The notes under the pieces: model-generated
What the model was told of the DNA's origin: nothing
Databases searched by the model: none
What the model saw: only the letters and a program-made list of their open reading frames with translations
Shown: one piece after another, positions 1 to 41,379 of the stretch
Position numbering within the stretch: position 1 is the stretch's first letter
How the letters are laid out: each line of letters starts with the position of its first letter
Made by a program: the position numbers and the translations under genes
Assembly: GCA_037447605.1 (NCBI GenBank)
Contig: CM074804.1
Span: 3,139,909 to 3,203,908 of the forward strand
Direction: 5' to 3'
Length of the DNA: 64,000 bases
Source of the DNA: Zygnema circumcarinatum SAG 698-1b
Taxonomy: Eukaryota > Plantae > Zygnematophyceae

Positions 1-901
1 ATTCAACAGGTTGGATGGAGTTAGAAACTGAATCGACGAATTTTTAATTGAAGTTGAACCATGGTCCATAAGTGTCCATGAAGCTTTTATGGGAGATTGG
101 GAACATTTGGCTTAAATCACTTATGAGGTCATGCCTTGAATATGGCTCTGAGTAAAGAAATTTTTGACTGGAACAATGCCTAAAGGTTATAAAGTTATGA
201 AGTTGCACCATTATAGCGCACCCTTACATATTGTGAAGTCCATCATTGTCATTGTTCATTTGATTAACAACAAAGAAACAAAGACTTTGACAACATGAAA
301 TTATATCAAAAAACATAAATGAGTCATTTCTCATGTGCTTAGGTATTTTGTCGATGCTTTCCCAAGTGAGCGTTCGAAGGCCTACTCCTAATCGTCCGTT
401 GCTCCTCGCCCTTCACTTCAACAGAAATTGAAGTCCTGTACTTTCACAATTACGACTTTGTTCCTTGAGAGTGCGAGGTGCCGACGAAACATTGGAGAGG
501 AATTTCCTGGACTGGTGATAGATTTCAGAACAAGAAATTTCTAAGCCGGTGAGCATGAGGCAGGGGCCATGCGATATGAGCACGAAGTCACTAATTCCTT
601 TATCAACCATTCACTGAAAAAGAATTCACTATAAGACGATTACTTTGTAACTCTCAATCAGCCGCTGTTAGGTTAAGCCCATCACTACCATCCCTGATGC
701 AGAAAAACGAGAACAGAGTTTTTAAAGCTTCAAAAAGCAAGCTCGGCTAGTTATTCTTCTTGAAAGTTTCATGCCACTCACCTGAATCGAGTCCAAAGGT
801 CCTCTCTACGATGTAGATGAGGAAGGATAGCGACCATTGCATCAGCTGTTCACGAAGGCGCGTAAATGTGCTGTGGACAGAGAGATTCTTCCTTATCCTT
901 A

Positions 902-2900
902 TCAAGAGAGAGAAGGAGAAGGCGTAGTCCCACGCAGTTTTCTATGTCGATCAAGAAAGCATTGTGCTAAGTGGCTGAAGCGAATATTCACATCGCCCGC
1001 CGCAGCAAAAAGCTCCATACACTGAATGACTGCCGGCGTAGCAATATCTATTTGAACCGAACAAATTGGGAGGAAACACAGAGTCAGAGAAGACAAAACA
1101 GGCGACGAAAGGCAGTTTGCAAGCAGAAAGTTACTTCATCTTCTAATGGCCACTCAGAGATTTGAAACTCCTAAAACTGGACTCGGATTAGTTACATGAA
1201 AGCATAACCTTCAAGGAGAAGTGTCAGAAGCATTGTTTACCTTTGAAAGTACGTTCACTGTGCAGGTAGTACAAGGTTGTGATGGACGACAGAACCTGGA
1301 AACCCATACATTACATGGTTACTTACCAAGGAAAACAAAACTGCATACTTTCGATCAAAACCTTATTTCCTGCAGGCCATGAAGAGTGGATTATCCTGCA
1401 AAGTTCGGAGAGAGGGAGGGGGGGGGGGGGGGGGGGGGGNNNNNNNNNNGGGGAGGTAATGACTCACAGTATTTTCAACGGGACTGGACAAACACGCAAC
1501 GATTGATGGTATACCGTCGTTTTCCACAATGATTGCGGCATTCTTTGGATCTGTGGAATGGACAGGAAAATACCATGGAGTTCAGTTTTGTGTCTCGCTG
1601 CTTAACACTCCTTAAATTTGGAAGCCAATACAACCCTGAAAGCCAGGTTAACCCAATTCATCTTCAGCTTTCCTACGCTAAGTATTGGTCGGAAAAGAGA
1701 CACAACTTTTGTTCTTGTAGTTGACCAACATTCAAAATCCAATAGCCACCACACTATGTGCAAGAAGTACGTTTCTGTTTCAAACTTTTAGAACAAACCA
1801 CGCCTTCCTCATCTTACCAGGGCAACAGTTGCAAATGCCTCCCATGCCGAATTCTTGAAGTTTTTCATTTGGCTCCGTTAAACAGTCAATGAAGAGGTCC
1901 AACACATGTAGCTGCCACCACACTCAACCAAATCTTGAAACAGTCAGCTGATGAACTATCAAACGTTCAGTGAATCTGGTCGACTCCAGAACATTGAACG
2001 GTGCTTCAGGTCTATTTCTACTTTGCCACTCTTCTCAATCCTACAAAAAAGGAGTCGGTACACAGACACATTTGTGAGGTGCAAAATATACTACATTTCA
2101 TAAAGGATGCTCTCTCGTTTGAAATTTAAGCCTGAATCCGATCCTTCATAAAGGATCTCTTTGGCGCCTGAACATACAATTTTACATCATTGACAACCTC
2201 CGGAAAGGGACCCTTTGGAAACATCATGCAACGTAAAACAGACTTTAGGTCATCCAAAAGTGCTGAAAGGACCGAAGTGGCTTTTTGCAACTAGCAAAAG
2301 ATGGCTTGTGCATACGAAAGATGCCATTACATGAGGCAGGGGCTACCTTAGACTTACTGTACGCAAATGCTCGTAGTTGATGGGGTCATAAGCAAAGTTG
2401 GCAAGGTTAGCGACTATCTGCTCCTTCGCCTCTGCGAACACTACAGAACTGAGGGTTAGGGGAAAGAGCAGGGATGAGAACGGCGGAGGAGAGAGAAAGA
2501 GTGAGAAAGCATACTTTTCGGAGGCACAGGAAAGATGGGCGGAGATCGCTTCCGATCGCAATGCAAAGAATTTCCTAAATGCAGAACATTACTTTCTGAC
2601 CATAAGAATAGACAAAGGACCAGGTGAACTGCGCACCCTCATCTCGTGTAGTCTGAAACTCTGTCACCAGCTCCTGTTGCTCCGATTAATATCCCCAGAA
2701 AATGCAGCAAAGACCAGTCAAAGGAAAATACAATAAGTAACAATTGGAAGAGTGTATCTTGGTATCTTGATAAAAAAAGGGTGATTGCGATCGAAAAGGA
2801 GCAAAGATGACCGTGAGAATGACTGTACTTGTAGATAATCGAAGCGAGGGGTTCCATAGCGTCCTGTTCGCTCCTTGAGCCGCTGTTCTGTACTGAACAT
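902..2900 (-). CDS. ARMC7: Armadillo repeat-containing protein 7-like (7 exons)
   Basis: Exons at about 2829-2900 ([24 protein letters not shown]), 2637-2673 ([11 protein letters not shown]), 2358-2431 ([25 protein letters not shown]), ~1819-1911 ([30 protein letters not shown]), ~1466-1550 ([24 protein letters not shown]), ~1241-1294 ([11 protein letters not shown]) and 902-~1048. All joins are GT-AG and in frame, and the motifs match ARMC7 as recalled. Confidence 0.9.
1440..1449. other. Assembly gap (10 N) inside a poly-G run, in an ARMC7 intron
   Basis: N characters flanked by a G homopolymer. Confidence 0.95.
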
Positions 2901-3316
2901 CAAGGTCACGGTCCCCCTCTCCTCTCTCCCCTTCCCTCTCCCGCTTGCTCTCCTGACCGGCGACTGTATCTCACTTATCGATACTATTTTCAGATACCAC
3001 TCTGCTCTCCTCGCTTTCTTTCTTACAACCCTAACTGGTACACCAGTACGCACTGTAGAATGAACTTCATGAAGGCTGTACGGGAGATCGTCAGATCGAA
3101 ACTGTACAGTAAGGAAGTAAGGAGTCTTTCATCAAACCTGAAAAGGCGCTTTATGAAAAGGTGACTACCGGTATCTCATCTTACGGATTCTCCCTCCTAC
3201 TGCTGCGCCCTTTTTTCTTTTTTTTACTGTAGCATCATCCCAGCATTTAAATACAGCACAGTGTCCCTCCAGCAGGCCCAGTGTCTGCCATATCCATCTC
3301 TCCCCTTGCAGAGACA

Positions 3317-4289
3317 ATGGCAGTCGGTCAGTTCCTTCGCCGTCGACTCCTCCTTCATCAACAACGGCATTCTTCCTCAGCTATCTTCAAGCGAGCCCTC
3401 TCTCGTCACGCTGGCTCTCAAGGAGACGATGGCAACTTCGCCGGTGAGATTTGATGACAAACTTTTCTTTGTGTCACAGAATTTGTGAGCTTGCCTTCGT
3501 CAGCGAGTGAAGGGTGAACAAAGGACCTTCAAAATGGAGGTGAAAGGACGAGAATGCCTGGAACCATAGCTTTTAGTGAAGAATGCGGTGCGATCTTAGT
3601 ACGAAAGGGTGAAATGGAGTCGAAAACTACATTGAGTAGTCGTAAGTTCTTAACTGTGCAAATCTTAACTTGCAAGTGCTTCAAAATTGACACACCAAAT
3701 TGAGAACTTGCAAACCTCAACTGCTTTTTTTCGATTCTGCTAAAGAACCTTTCCATTTATACACTCGTCAGAAACTCAATTTCCTTCCTCAGCAAGAGGT
3801 GCAATTTCCAACGCCCAGATTAAACAGAATGAAGTTTGAAAATATGTGTACTTAATAGCTCCACCTGGAAATTAATAACTGTAGATTGAGAGACAGAAGC
3901 CCGGGAGGCAGCTGGTGGCAAGTACTTCACTGCCCTCCAATTGCAGTTGAAGCGGCTTTTTAAAAGGAGAGTGGTGTCCCGAAAGAGGACATCACTAGGT
4001 AGGGAGTTTCAGTTTATACTAAAGGCGAATGCGAACAAGCAAGCTCTTTTTATTCTTTTTTTAGGTGGTAGGTGTGAAGTTCGTTGGTATAAACGTTATA
4101 TTGGTCTGATTTTCCTGTTGCACAGCGACAAGAGTACCATACATTGGCGCATACTCGCCTGCCAGCTCTTTTTTTGAGCAAGACTTCGCGAGGCTGTCGT
4201 GTGAGCTCTTCAGTTCCTCCGGAATGGCTGGGCACTTTTATTCGACTTGGGCCCAACCCAAGTCCCCTCCCTTTCGAGAAGCCTCTGAG
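3317..4289 (+). CDS. 5' exons encoding a transit-peptide-like N-terminus plus a carotenoid-cleavage-dioxygenase (CCD/RPE65 family) N-terminal fragment; probably the first exons of the downstream Rieske gene
   Basis: Exon 3317-3443 (MAVGQFLRRRLLLHQQRHSSSAIFKRALSRHAGSQGDDGNFA, donor GTGAG) plus exon 4166-4289 gives GNFA-ALFLSKTSRGCRVSSSVPPEWLGTFIR-LGPNP. These are the CCD GNFAP and RxGPNP motifs at CCD-like spacing. The frame stops at TGA 4291-4293 unless it is spliced at 4289. Confidence 0.55.
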
Positions 4290-4715
4290 GTGATTTTGGC
4301 TTTGCACAGACTTTGGCGCTTCAAAGTGTTCATAGGGTAAGCAAATGAATCAACAGGGATTGAAATTCATTTTTTGCAGTACCGGTGTTATCTAGGCCCT
4401 AGGGCCATTTGCTGTTTTGCAGGGAGTTCGACAGTTGTTTGTTTCAGCAGACAGTTGTTTTTTGTTTTTACAGCAATGCAGAACATGCTCAGATCCCTAA
4501 CTTTTCTGATCAAAGCTTCCAAGACAATAGATAGGATGAGATTCCATTGAAGGCTGACATAGTGACTTCGCTAGGCGTAGCATGCGTTGAACATAAACGT
4601 GACCCCTTCTTTGAGTTATAAATATTTTTTTTTGTTGCGAAGAAGAGTGATTTAGCACGCTTTTAGAGGCTCTTTCAAGCTCTTTACTCAAGTGTTTGCT
4701 TCACAATTCCACCAG

Positions 4716-7700
4716 GTCCCAGTGACAGAAAACTTTCTGGCAGCCCTGGAAGGCAGTCTTCAGCCAGACTTTGACCCCAGGTAACAATCCTGCAGGGGCA
4801 GACACCTCTCCTGGAGATCTGCATACACGCAGATGCGAATAGGGGCTGCAAGATAGGGAGCCGCAAGCGTTGAGAAATTCCCTGCTCCTGCTTGCAGCCG
4901 TCATGGGATTCTGGGCCTTTGAAGCGGTGCAGCCTTTACGATGGAGAGGGATGGCCTCCTCCCCCCGCGGTGTATCTCAACCCTGCGGGTGAGATTCTGT
5001 TTCAAATTGTGGAAGTGCTCTAGTCACTAGAAAGTCCAATTAGTGGTCACTGAGCAAAAGTGTATGGCTAACAATAGTGAGCTCACGATTCACTGTTCAT
5101 TAAAGAGGCTTGTCGCGGATTACTACATGGTGCTTATCGTAGTTTGTGCCGACGTAGACCTGCTACTATGTGGATGTGGATTACAGCGCAGACTCCTCAA
5201 ACTCTCACCTCTAACAAATGCAAGTTATGGCCGGTTCGATGTGTGCTTGCAGTGGCAGAAGCAGAGATGCAGAAAGTGTTTTGGCATTCCTGGCAAGTGG
5301 TAGGCAGCAAAGTGCAAGTGGAGAGCCCCGGGGACTACTTCACTGGGGACATTGGGGCCCTCCGCTTTGTGGTCTGCAGGTGTGCCTCTCCCTCCTCCCC
5401 GCCAATGTGCCGACAAAGGAGCAGCTTCACTTTATGGCTATGGATAGATGCATACTTAGACATTTCACTTTATGGCTATGGATAGATGCATACTTAGAAA
5501 TTTCACTTTATGGCTATGGATAGATGCATACAGTACTTAGAAACTTCGACTTTGACAGTGCAGCCGACGCAGTCCCTTGATTCCGCGATTGGCCGCGCGT
5601 GTGACAGGGATGGCGCGGGCAAGCTGCAGGCTTTCCACAACGTCTGCAGGCACCACGCAGCCGCGGTAGCCAATGGGGAGGGCCGCTGCGACCGCTTCGT
5701 GTGCCCCTATCACGGCTGGACGTACAGCCTCGACGGCCGACTGCAGCGGGCCACTCGCCTGAGCGGCATCAAGGTGGTGCTCGTAGCCGTCCACTGTGCA
5801 CGCATTGACCCCGTCAGAGTAACTGCCACCTGTAGGGCGAGGATTCTACTTCTACAGAGCAATCGCAACACACTGCAGAACTTCTGCTAGCAGTGCGCAT
5901 GGCTGTGTGTCGACGAAGCCAACGAGTAACGACGGGGCTAAGAGTTAGTGTTCAAGTTGACAATCCTCTCACTTTGAAGTGTTTTTTTCGCAGAACTTCT
6001 CCCCTCGTGACTATGGGCTTGTGGCGATCCCGCGAGTTGGCCTTTGCGGCCCCCTCGTTCTCATGCACGTGGAGGCAGTGTTGGGGGGTGCTAAGTCCCC
6101 CGCTCCGCAGGGCGAGGCAGCAAAGCAGTCCGCCGTTGCGAGTGAAGAGGAGATTTGCAAAGAGTGGATGGACGACTATAAGGGGCTTCCGCCCTTTGGT
6201 AATCTCCCTCATGTAAAGCATCTGGCGATGAAGCAATGGGAGGTGGTACGTTCTTACAGACCCATGAAGAGACGCTGTTTAGGGGCTTTCTTTCTTTTTA
6301 GGGGTGGCGGGCTGGCTAATTGACTAAGAGTAAAGATGACTAAGTGCTGACTTCGAGGTCTGTGCTTTCTGGACTTGGGAGAACTGTTGCAGAACTGCAA
6401 CTGGAAGGTGCTTGTGGACTCATTCTTAGGCCTTTCTTACAGCAATACTTCAGCAAGTCAAGTTGCCTCGATCAATTCCATACAGGTCAGACCACTTCTT
6501 TTCCTTCAGTTTTTCCTCCTTTTCCTTTTGTTTTGTTGCATTAGCTCCATCTCTCAGGTGTACTCCAGAGGGTGTCACCCGCACCCTTCAGCAGGCACCT
6601 CCATATGAAACCACTTGACAGTTTTGTCAATGCCCCCCCTGCAGAATGCCCCTCAAATGAGAGTTGTTGAAGCAAGCGGAGCGGCCATTGCTGGCGACAA
6701 AGAGACGTTCAATTTCTCTGGTGCAGCGCATGCCTTCAATTTTCCTAATTTCTTTGCCAGCAGGTGCGCGCTGCTGCCTAACGGAACGGACGCACACCGT
6801 CCTTCACTCGGTCGAGATAAGACTGCGTTTTGCCCGCTTCTGTAATGGAGTTTCTTGCCACGTGGATTGACATGTATGGGCGTTGGTCTCTTTGTCAAGG
6901 ATTCAGCTGGCAAGGTAAAGCAAGGTAGGCATGCATGGAAAGCTTTCTGTGAGGCTTTCAGAGGCCTTCTTATGCCTGGTCCTCTGCACTACAGTCAAAT
7001 TTGTAGATGTTGCAATATTTCTTAGTATGTGGGAGTTAAAAGCAACTGGCGTGTTGGTTTGGTGGAAATGAGGCTGTCTGTTTCAAAGTGATTGAGCATG
7101 TCGTCGGGGAAAGTGGCATACATGGCGGAACAGAAGGGGTTTCCTGTAGTAGCCACGGGTTACCTGCTGAGTTGTATAGTGCGCTTTGCGAGTGCTTCCT
7201 TTTCTGTCAAGAGAAAGGGGGATGGGAGTCGTCAAACATGCGTGGTTCTTGAAGAGAAGAAAAGCAGTCTCTGATTCGCTTACCACCTTTTTCTCCGCAG
7301 ACAGTAATACTGTAAGATATGGGGATTCTATCGAATGCTTGCTATTTGAACACCAGCCTTACAGCCTAGCGGAATTCACAACGGCCAGTCTATGACGATC
7401 ATTGCTTAGCTAGGAAATCCGTCTGCGTGACAATGTTGTGAAGAATGGTTGAGGGGCATTGCAGGTACGGACCCTGGCTTTGTACGAACACCATTCTGCC
7501 AATAGCTGCTGAAGAATCTCTCATTACTCAAAACTGTTATATTGAGGAGACTTGCGCAATTGACTCCAGAGGGCAGTACATAGAAAGATGTCTGGTCGCC
7601 CAGCAGGAGGTACTTGGCTCAAACTTCCAAATGTGCAGGATGCATGGGCCCATGCCAATATCATGAAGCCTATACTTTCTACCTTCCCTAACCTCATGCT

Positions 7701-7914
7701 CAACCGTAAATTCATTACAACTTTTGGAGTTACAGTAGACATGACCATGTGATAGTGCTGTCTCCTGGGACTGACACGTGTGCAGGTGGTCAGTGAACAA
7801 GCGCGTCTGTGTGAGGAGCTGCAACGGCATGTCAACTCAGCAACGTACGCTCCCATCAGAACATGCGCTAACCAAAAGTTTCACCGACAGCTGCGTCAGC
7901 ATTTAAGCAGTTGA
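4716..7914 (+). CDS. Choline monooxygenase-like Rieske protein with intact Rieske cluster motif but no mononuclear Fe ligands; 5' end uncertain (likely ATG 3317)
   Basis: Exons at 4716(or 4667)-4780, 4933-4988 (join reads FDPSLYDGEGWPPPPAVYLNP), 5253-~5379 (VFWHSWQVVG..PGDYFTG), 5608-5773 (AFHNVCRHH..FVCPYHGWTY), 5994-6246, 6393-6485 (NCNWKVLVDSFL..), ~6644-6763 (AFNFPNFFASR), ~7465-7610 (YGPWLCTN) and 7786-7914 (LCEELQRH..FHRQLRQHLSS*). Order and spacing match plant CMO. Confidence 0.88.
5426..5543. repeat. Intronic tandem repeat, 3 x 38 bp (TTCACTTTATGGCTATGGATAGATGCATACTTAGAnAT)
   Basis: Units start at 5426, 5464 and 5502. The third unit has a 4-bp insertion. There are no spacers. Confidence 0.95.
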
Positions 7915-20691: not shown

Positions 20692-20746
20692 GTACCCGTA
20701 CAAGTTCGAGCGTACGGCACCGTACAAGCTTACGTACGTACAGTAC
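20692..20746. promoter_or_regulatory. GTAC/CCGTAC array (7 GTAC in 55 bp) in the ACD/ATG3 divergent promoter
   Basis: GTAC at 20692, 20698, 20712, 20722, 20734, 20738 and 20743. GTAC is the SBP/SPL-binding core. Confidence 0.6.
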
Positions 20747-40558: not shown

Positions 40559-41379
40559 GGCTGCCGCTTTTGCACAACCGTCTAACGGAGACGAAGGAGA
40601 CGAAGCGTACGGTGACGAGCGCGGAGAGAAGGGATGAGGAAGCCGGCACGGCGAGCGGCGAGGCGGGCAGGCAGGCAGGCAGGGAGGCAGGGAGGCAGGA
40701 GAGCAGGCGGGCAGGCAGGCGGGGAGGGGCAGGCGGGGAGAGGGCCGGTTTGTTGGGCGGGGCGGGGACCTTCCCCCGCTCGGCCTCGCTGGCTGCCGCG
40801 TTAACCGTACGGACGGCCACTCCTGCGTACGGCGAGGCGGGGAACGCGCACTCCCGTTCAGTCATCGGCAAATAAGGAATTCCCTGAAATCTCGTATTTT
40901 ACTTATTTTTGGGACCATTTTGAGTTTCATTTTCGGGATTTGAGGGACTTTTTTCTTTTTGTACTTTTTTATATCTTTTCGTACCTTTTGTGTATTTTTG
41001 TACCTTCTTTTAAGGTACTTTGACTGTACTTTTGGACGACGTTTTTGTCTTGAAGCAGCATTCGAAGCCACGGTTTTTCTTACATTGCGGATATGCCTAA
41101 CGACGCTTGAAGCATGAGAGTTCGCCTCCTTGTTCACCCCATGCTGTCACTTATAATACAATGAATAAATTCAATTCTTTTGGAGAGCTGAATCGATTCA
41201 GATGGAAACTTAAACACAAAGTGCAGGTTTCCTTGTGGTTTCCATAGTCACAAGCAAAGACTCACTGGTCCAAGTACTAAAGAATTGAAAATGCAACTCT
41301 CTTTTCTCCAAAGCCCTCACCCAAACCCCTGTGCTGCCCTCCCTACATCTTCGCCAAAACGACCAACTGTTTTCAATAT

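Follow-up and report, generated by a model that had tools for sequence, protein, structure and literature searches.

That genes acquire leaders from heterologous loci through exon shuffling is well established (PMC7456531), and GAPDH exons gave rise to the presequence of plant cytochrome c1 (Long et al. 1996, cited in PMC7456531). Here, we describe a locus from the streptophyte alga Zygnema circumcarinatum SAG 698-1b that may represent a related case. It is located in a stretch of 64,000 nucleotides (GenBank assembly GCA_037447605.1, contig CM074804.1, positions 3,139,909 to 3,203,908 of the forward strand), which is called the window in the following and to whose first letter all positions refer, and it comprises a CMO-like Rieske gene with 5' exons that resemble the N-terminus of a carotenoid cleavage dioxygenase (CCD). 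We favor the reading, at a probability of roughly 0.55, that the relic of a CCD 5' end has been captured as the leader of this CMO-like gene, which itself appears to be catalytically dead. As in the cytochrome c1/GAPDH and transit-peptide exon shuffling cases, an enzyme would owe its leader to 5' exons of a gene unrelated to it, a short recognizable similarity to the donor is retained (here 36% identity over about 36 residues to plant CCD1 and VP14), and the exon phases are compatible. Unlike in the cytochrome c1 case, the donor gene and the fused transcript are putative here, and the recipient is a homologue that is catalytically dead itself. Leader capture as such is known, and the combination of CCD and CMO would be a further example of it; in the literature searched, no CCD-CMO chimera is described.

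The CCDs (PF03055/RPE65), such as plant CCD1 (PDB 9m3e) and maize VP14 (PDB 3npe), are characterized by the motif G-x-[FY]-A-P-V ... R-x-G-P-N-P with a spacing of 28 residues. The locus shares with them GNFA, the 28 residues and G-P-N-P in exact register, together with Val, Pro, Gly, Phe, and Arg at the conserved positions of the first strand segment. It differs from them in that it comprises only about 45 residues, ends few residues after GPNP, lacks H-x-FDGDGM, the seven-bladed propeller and the four His ligands, is not detected by Pfam, and cannot be an enzyme. An earlier note on this DNA had proposed a chimeric gene, in which such a CCD fragment is joined to the Rieske exons by a path of GT-AG introns. 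The 5' part of the gene along this path is organized as follows:

3317..3443, plus strand: exon 1, with the start codon and an Arg/Ser-rich presequence-like leader; GNFA at its end (3431-3442)
3444..4165, plus strand: intron 1 of the path, phase 1, directly after the GNFA codons; GT at 3444, AG at 4164-5
4166..4289, plus strand: exon 2, CCD-like, with the core motif VPPEWLGTFIRLGPNP at 4213-4260
4290..4666, plus strand: intron 2 of the path, GC 0.40, containing the segment 4423-4576
4667..4780, plus strand: exon 3, near whose end the CMO homology starts (..SLQPDFDP)
4933..4988, plus strand: exon 4, LYDGEGWPPPPAVYLNPA, CMO-homologous

Every splice site of this path is present, and 5/5 of the named exons are open in their own phase, just as the note had described. 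The donors (slash for the exon border) are G/GTGAGA at 3444, GAG/GTGATT at 4290, CAG/GTAACA at 4781, and GG/GTGAGA at 4989, and the acceptor AGs are found at 4164-5, 4665-6, 4931-2, and 5251-2. Exon 1, whose ATG has the context ACAATGG, translates to MAVGQFLRRRLLLHQQRHSSSAIFKRALSRHAGSQGDDGNFA, which is basic and Ser-rich with the first acidic residue not before position 37. The translation of exon 2 is LFLSKTSRGCRVSSSVPPEWLGTFIRLGPNP, and its reading frame as translated in phase is LFLSKTSRGCRVSSSVPPEWLGTFIRLGPNPSPLPFEKPL. The motif pair GNFA-(27 aa)-LGPNP is present as had been claimed, with 28 residues from GNFA to GPNP if the residue of the split codon is counted (27 + L).

Since standard pipelines filter out short weak matches, a targeted CCD profile test was carried out with all filters off. 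For the reference set, 120 bacterial loci were collected with a DNA pattern for H-x-FDGDGM, and 76 complete natural open reading frames (ORFs; 440-560 residues) were aligned and converted into a profile hidden Markov model; six of them were checked and matched PF03055 at E <= 1e-122. Searches were performed exon by exon, and register scores were summed from the separately scored exons, without the residue whose codon is split between exons 1 and 2. Exon 2 reached 9.1 bits against the 76-CCD profile (hmmsearch --max; P 2.6e-5 for one sequence) in a match that covers profile nodes 34-57, 'leveGeiPadLeGvflRnGpnple'. It ranks first among the 1,422 stop-free pieces of the window, with the runner-up at 2.3 bits, and its score was reached by 0/20,000 shuffles. 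As controls, a maximum of 5.1 bits was obtained on the same profile for 1,049 pieces of four further CMO-like loci from eukaryotes, and a maximum of 0.5 bits for 55 CMO/Rieske fragments.

If the alignment is extended without gaps, GNFA at the end of exon 1 falls on nodes 20-23 (G-x-Y-A of G-x-Y-A-P-V) and adds +5.16 bits (exact null P 2.1e-4), while all 12 neighboring offsets score negative. Among the four in-phase acceptors that are usable from exon 1 (exon starts 4133, 4166, 4193, and 4214), only 4166, which also has the best sequence context, restores the CCD register. The agreement of the GNFA-GPNP spacing with CCDs, stated in the earlier note, was confirmed: 28 residues is the modal spacing in the reference CCDs and is also found in 9m3e and 3npe, both of which read GNFAPV. 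At the locus, the Pro-Val after GNFA is replaced by Ala-Leu. Ungapped identity is 13/36 to plant CCD1 and likewise 13/36 to VP14.

The original idea rested on two tetrapeptides, and therefore a held-out test was carried out, in which only the 25 residues between them were scored. In the fixed register (nodes 25-49) these residues yield +8.58 bits, compared to a null mean of -20.5 with a standard deviation of 6.1. This score was reached by 4 out of 101,437 six-frame 25-mers and by 24 out of 483,538 25-mers from bacterial ORFs, which corresponds to a P of about 4-5e-5. The conserved residues Val36, Val40, Pro41, Gly46, Phe48, and Arg50 are still present. On nodes 25-49, genuine CCDs reach 16-43 bits, and the held-out stretch lies well below every one of them. 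Such an intermediate score, above chance and below real CCDs, is as expected for a decayed relic. Overall, these results favor a decayed N-terminal CCD fragment that precedes the CMO-like Rieske exons in the same frame.

Several further observations, together with the distance of the held-out score from genuine CCDs, weigh against a CCD ancestry. In comparison with Pfam-A no PF03055 match was obtained at E <= 10 on the single exons 1 and 2 or the surrounding stop-free stretches; hence the HMMER comparison with PF03055, for which the earlier note had named the lack of a significant match as refuting its proposal, turned out negative on single exons. With the score scaled to the whole of Pfam, the E-value of exon 2 alone would be about 0.6. 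No CCD was found by phmmer in the PDB with the exon sequences, and the ESM Atlas gave no signal for the exon-2 stretch. Searches of representative proteins, word searches, and metagenome searches yielded no ortholog, no donor paralogue, and no transcript or protein of the species itself over the 5' exons. Six-frame scanning of the 64 kb with the CCD profile revealed nothing CCD-like after GPNP or elsewhere. The strongly conserved residues Glu28, Gly38, and Leu44 are lost. The evidence for the ancestry comes from targeted tests on a single family, which are strong (P 2.6e-5, 2.1e-4, and 4e-5), and not from a database-wide one. In addition, the idea was formed post hoc by a reader that scanned very many windows, which carries a large look-elsewhere cost that is hard to quantify, and with arbitrary GT-AG pairs there is a genome-wide space of about 6e10 placements, large enough for one family to yield a match by chance. 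Because of this search space and the post hoc origin, the argument for ancestry leans on the context, namely the first coding exon, the best acceptor and the exact register, as well as on the held-out residues.

A word search with the exon-1 stretch returned no candidates, and one that used the first 115 residues of a CCD1-like CCD from bacteria and was aimed at plant CCD N-termini returned five matches only, all of them bacterial. A single metagenome match to the exon-2 stretch (L128) was rejected as spurious, as it lies in a non-coding frame of a bacterial relaxase/primase contig and is based on the word PALFLSKT.

The first alternative to be weighed is that exons 1 and 2 constitute an ordinary lineage-specific targeting leader and that the CCD-like motifs are coincidental in a fast-evolving sequence under low constraint. 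The lack of a database-wide significant match in Pfam, PDB, and Atlas, the missing Glu28, Gly38, and Leu44, and the enormous search space opened by a free choice of GT-AG sites would fit such a coincidence. Within the window alone, 204 open GT-AG paths with one intron connect some ATG to the FDP codons, so that the proposed path is not distinctive, which limits the case for a captured relic as well. By chance, the six frames of the window contain two copies each of GNFA and of GPNP, and the leaders of plant CMOs show neither conservation nor a constant length. However, coincidence would have to account for the held-out 25 residues (P about 4e-5, with the register set in advance), for an exon 2 that tops the window by 6 bits, and for a GNFA that is brought into exact register by the best acceptor, and nothing similar occurs in other CMO leaders or in the control loci. 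A chance resemblance appears somewhat unlikely to us.

The second alternative accepts the CCD relic as real but regards exon 2 as a dead pseudo-exon outside of the Rieske mRNA. Exon 1 might then be spliced directly to 4744, 4693, or 4723, or translation might start in another frame at ATG 4224, with splicing from 4289 to 4716 or from 4336 to 4667. All of these paths are open and use GT-AG sites, and the in-frame acceptors available for exon 3 allow exon starts at 4669, 4693, 4716, 4723, 4744, and 4757. The acceptor in front of 4744 (TTTCTGGCAG/C) is the best fit to the GCAG acceptors of the gene itself, and joining exon 1 to 4744 would place about 50 leader residues in front of FDP, as in plant CMOs (45-75 residues); along the proposed path the leader would be about 120 residues long. 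Moreover, acceptor 4666 reads TAG, in contrast to CAG at all six acceptors that are supported by homology, and the acceptor at 4117-8, which is out of frame with exon 1, looks stronger than 4166; both points count against a fused transcript containing exon 2. Codon usage was of no help, since log-odds trained on the long ORFs of the window did not separate the frames of the confirmed exons and were dropped for this reason.

On the other side, exon 2 stands out as a sharp GC island, as do the confirmed exons; the positions of exons 1 and 2 are matched by islands at 3260-3440 and 4140-4290 (GC 0.54-0.56 in the exons on both sides of intron 1, compared to 0.42 in the intron and 0.40-0.42 in the flanks). 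Both exon 1 and exon 2 have good donors, that of exon 2 being GAG/GTGATT, and the acceptor of exon 2 is reasonable. The junction from exon 1 to exon 2 via the best acceptor is in phase only in the CCD frame, and ATG 4224 lacks a cluster of GTAC sites upstream, such as the one that precedes exon 1. Taken together, a pseudo-exon seems to us a doubtful explanation, and the inclusion of exon 2 in the Rieske mRNA would stand at about even odds. The out-of-frame acceptor, TTTTCCTGTTGCACAG at 4103-4118, is located 47 nt upstream of acceptor 4166 and might compete with it or indicate an unproductive isoform. At 4288-4293, the donor of exon 2 and a stop codon in frame overlap (AG/GTGA), so that an unspliced reading terminates there and yields an 84-residue peptide that consists of the leader and the CCD-like relic only.

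There is no in-frame ATG from 4656 to 5266, i.e., in exons 3 and 4, and the start codon of the Rieske gene must therefore sit in an upstream coding exon. The suggestion that the stretch at 4716-4780 resembles both CCDs and the start of CMO was borne out for the CMO part only: CMO homology begins there, whereas exon 3 (4668-4778) scores -1.4 bits on the CCD profile, on unrelated nodes. The assignment of the CCD/CMO junction to 4716-4780 is thus not supported, since no CCD evidence but only the onset of CMO homology is found in this place. Likewise, the segment 4423-4576, skipped by the path and thought to be CCD-like, scores -3.5 bits and has no Pfam match; the in-frame TAG at 4532 within it is present.

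The proposed capture of a CCD 5' end could have taken place as follows, whereby ancestry, mechanism of fusion, targeting role, and the presence of exon 2 in the mRNA are inferred, and the motif pair, its register, the statistical excess, and the lack of a downstream start codon are direct observations. The CCD-derived part would comprise a promoter in common with the neighboring gene ARMC7, the start codon, the Arg/Ser-rich presequence, and about 45 further codons. What survived of the CCD would be its first conserved segment, i.e., G-N-F-A, a phase-1 intron, 28 residues, and G-P-N-P, decayed at several conserved positions and ending before H-x-FDGDGM and all four iron-binding histidines. A deletion or an unequal recombination may have removed the rest of the CCD and thereby brought its leading exon or exons within splicing range of the downstream Rieske gene, whose first homologous exons lack a start codon. 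Such a remnant cannot fold as a CCD and would most likely act only as N-terminal leader or organelle presequence. The resulting protein would keep the Rieske cluster and lack the catalytic iron.

If the CCD ancestry and the fused transcript are true, the locus would be a clean natural example, in a streptophyte alga, of a gene that owes its start codon, its promoter, and its targeting leader to the captured front of a gene next to it. Expression and targeting of a Rieske homologue that is already inactivated would then have an explanation as well, which bears on the question whether the dead enzyme has a function. The known chemistry of CCDs and CMOs is unchanged by the finding.

A further possibility is that the doubly dead chimera is a conserved functional protein, in which CCD segment and iron-less Rieske cluster were co-opted together instead of forming a leader by accident, e.g., as a plastid redox regulator or one linked to apocarotenoids, perhaps from an ancestral ARMC7-CCD-CMO neighborhood in streptophyte algae; we regard this as quite improbable. 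That an intact CCD starts here and continues in exons downstream of or interleaved with the Rieske gene would fit a CCD-like start with a promoter and nothing else, but this is effectively refuted within the window, exons of less than 30 residues or beyond the window end excepted, since no other piece exceeds 2.3 bits with the full-length profile in six frames of the 64 kb and no frame contains an FDGDG motif.

The CMO-like gene extends on the plus strand from about 4700 to 7900. Its homology to CMO runs from ..SLQPDFDP at the end of exon 3, where plant CMO fragments read ..LVxEFDPxIP.., through exons 4 and 5, and exon 4 aligns with IPIExAxTPPSSWYTDP of these fragments. Further exons of the gene body are:

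5253..5381, plus strand: exon 5, N-terminal part of the Rieske domain, identified by alignment with plant CMO
5609..5775, plus strand: exon 6, Rieske [2Fe-2S] ligands CRHH...CPYHGW; PF00355, E 1.1e-13 on 5609-5773
6393..6485, plus strand: exon 8, degenerate mononuclear-iron motif with both His replaced by Ser

As in CMO-type Rieske oxygenases (PF00355 + PF00848), to which the gene body is homologous from ..DFDP onward, the cluster ligands C-x-H ... C-x-x-H are intact. In contrast to these enzymes, both active-site histidines are replaced: the motif in exon 8 reads NWKVLVDSFLGLSYSNTSAS compared to NWKVFCDNYLDGGYHVPFAH in P0009 and L124, and the mononuclear iron motif D-x2-L-D-x3-H-x4-H is not preserved (DSFLGLSYSNTSAS compared to DNYLDGGYHVPFAH in the same two sequences). 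The prediction that the product has neither catalytic center is thus in agreement with our data, as the Rieske His pair is Ser in comparison with P0009 and L124 and the CCD iron ligands all lie beyond the fragment. A word search with the Rieske ORF retrieved plant CMO fragments, none from this species, with 57-70% identity in exon 6. CMO-like genes from uncultured eukaryotes (Tara Oceans and other assemblies) are present at L001 2100-4650, L124 8001-9137, and L125 6316-7719; they have an intact DNYLDGGYH..H iron motif and short presequences, and their intron positions are unlike those of the window gene. A CCD signal as conserved feature of CMO leaders was rejected for the loci at hand, as L001 and L124-L126 are active-site-intact and have short leaders without such a signal. 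For exon 7 (5994-6245, 84 residues), a search of 1.84 billion representative proteins at E < 1e-3 gave two matches only, both spurious and of low complexity, and neither a near relative nor a protein of the species itself. This portion of the dead enzyme is highly diverged. In the intron between exons 5 and 6, a 38-nt unit is repeated three times in tandem (100/97/79% identity) at 5426-5539.

Upstream of the gene, two features are located:

1783..1923, minus strand: internal exon of ARMC7, phmmer match to PDB 7dvq_K (E 4.9e-12, chain residues 55-92)
3038..3107, no strand: GTAC cluster, a putative shared promoter, with four sites at 3038, 3046, 3078, and 3104 inside the 417-bp gap

The head-to-head arrangement of ARMC7 and the gene starting at 3317, which had been predicted, is supported by the match to 7dvq_K and by the ARMC7 start codon, an ATG at 2900 on the minus strand, which leaves 417 bp to ATG 3317. 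Of the GTAC-rich promoter proposed for this interval, the four GTAC sites are indeed there, and the cluster may serve as putative common promoter of ARMC7 and the Rieske gene. Such a cluster is found upstream of exon 1 only and not upstream of ATG 4224. Capture by a transposon was rejected, as exons 1 and 2 are not flanked by terminal inverted or direct repeats. A misassembly as cause of the juxtaposition was also discarded, since the sole N run in the window, a 10-N assembly gap at 1440-1449, is not close by. This gap lies within the ARMC7 gene region, next to a G/C homopolymer-like run whose translation is poly-Gly or poly-Pro. In the whole window, GTAC occurs 218 times compared to 114 +/- 11 expected from shuffles, and tight clusters of it are found, e.g., at 20692-20746 and 40961-41029, in addition to the one at 3038-3107.

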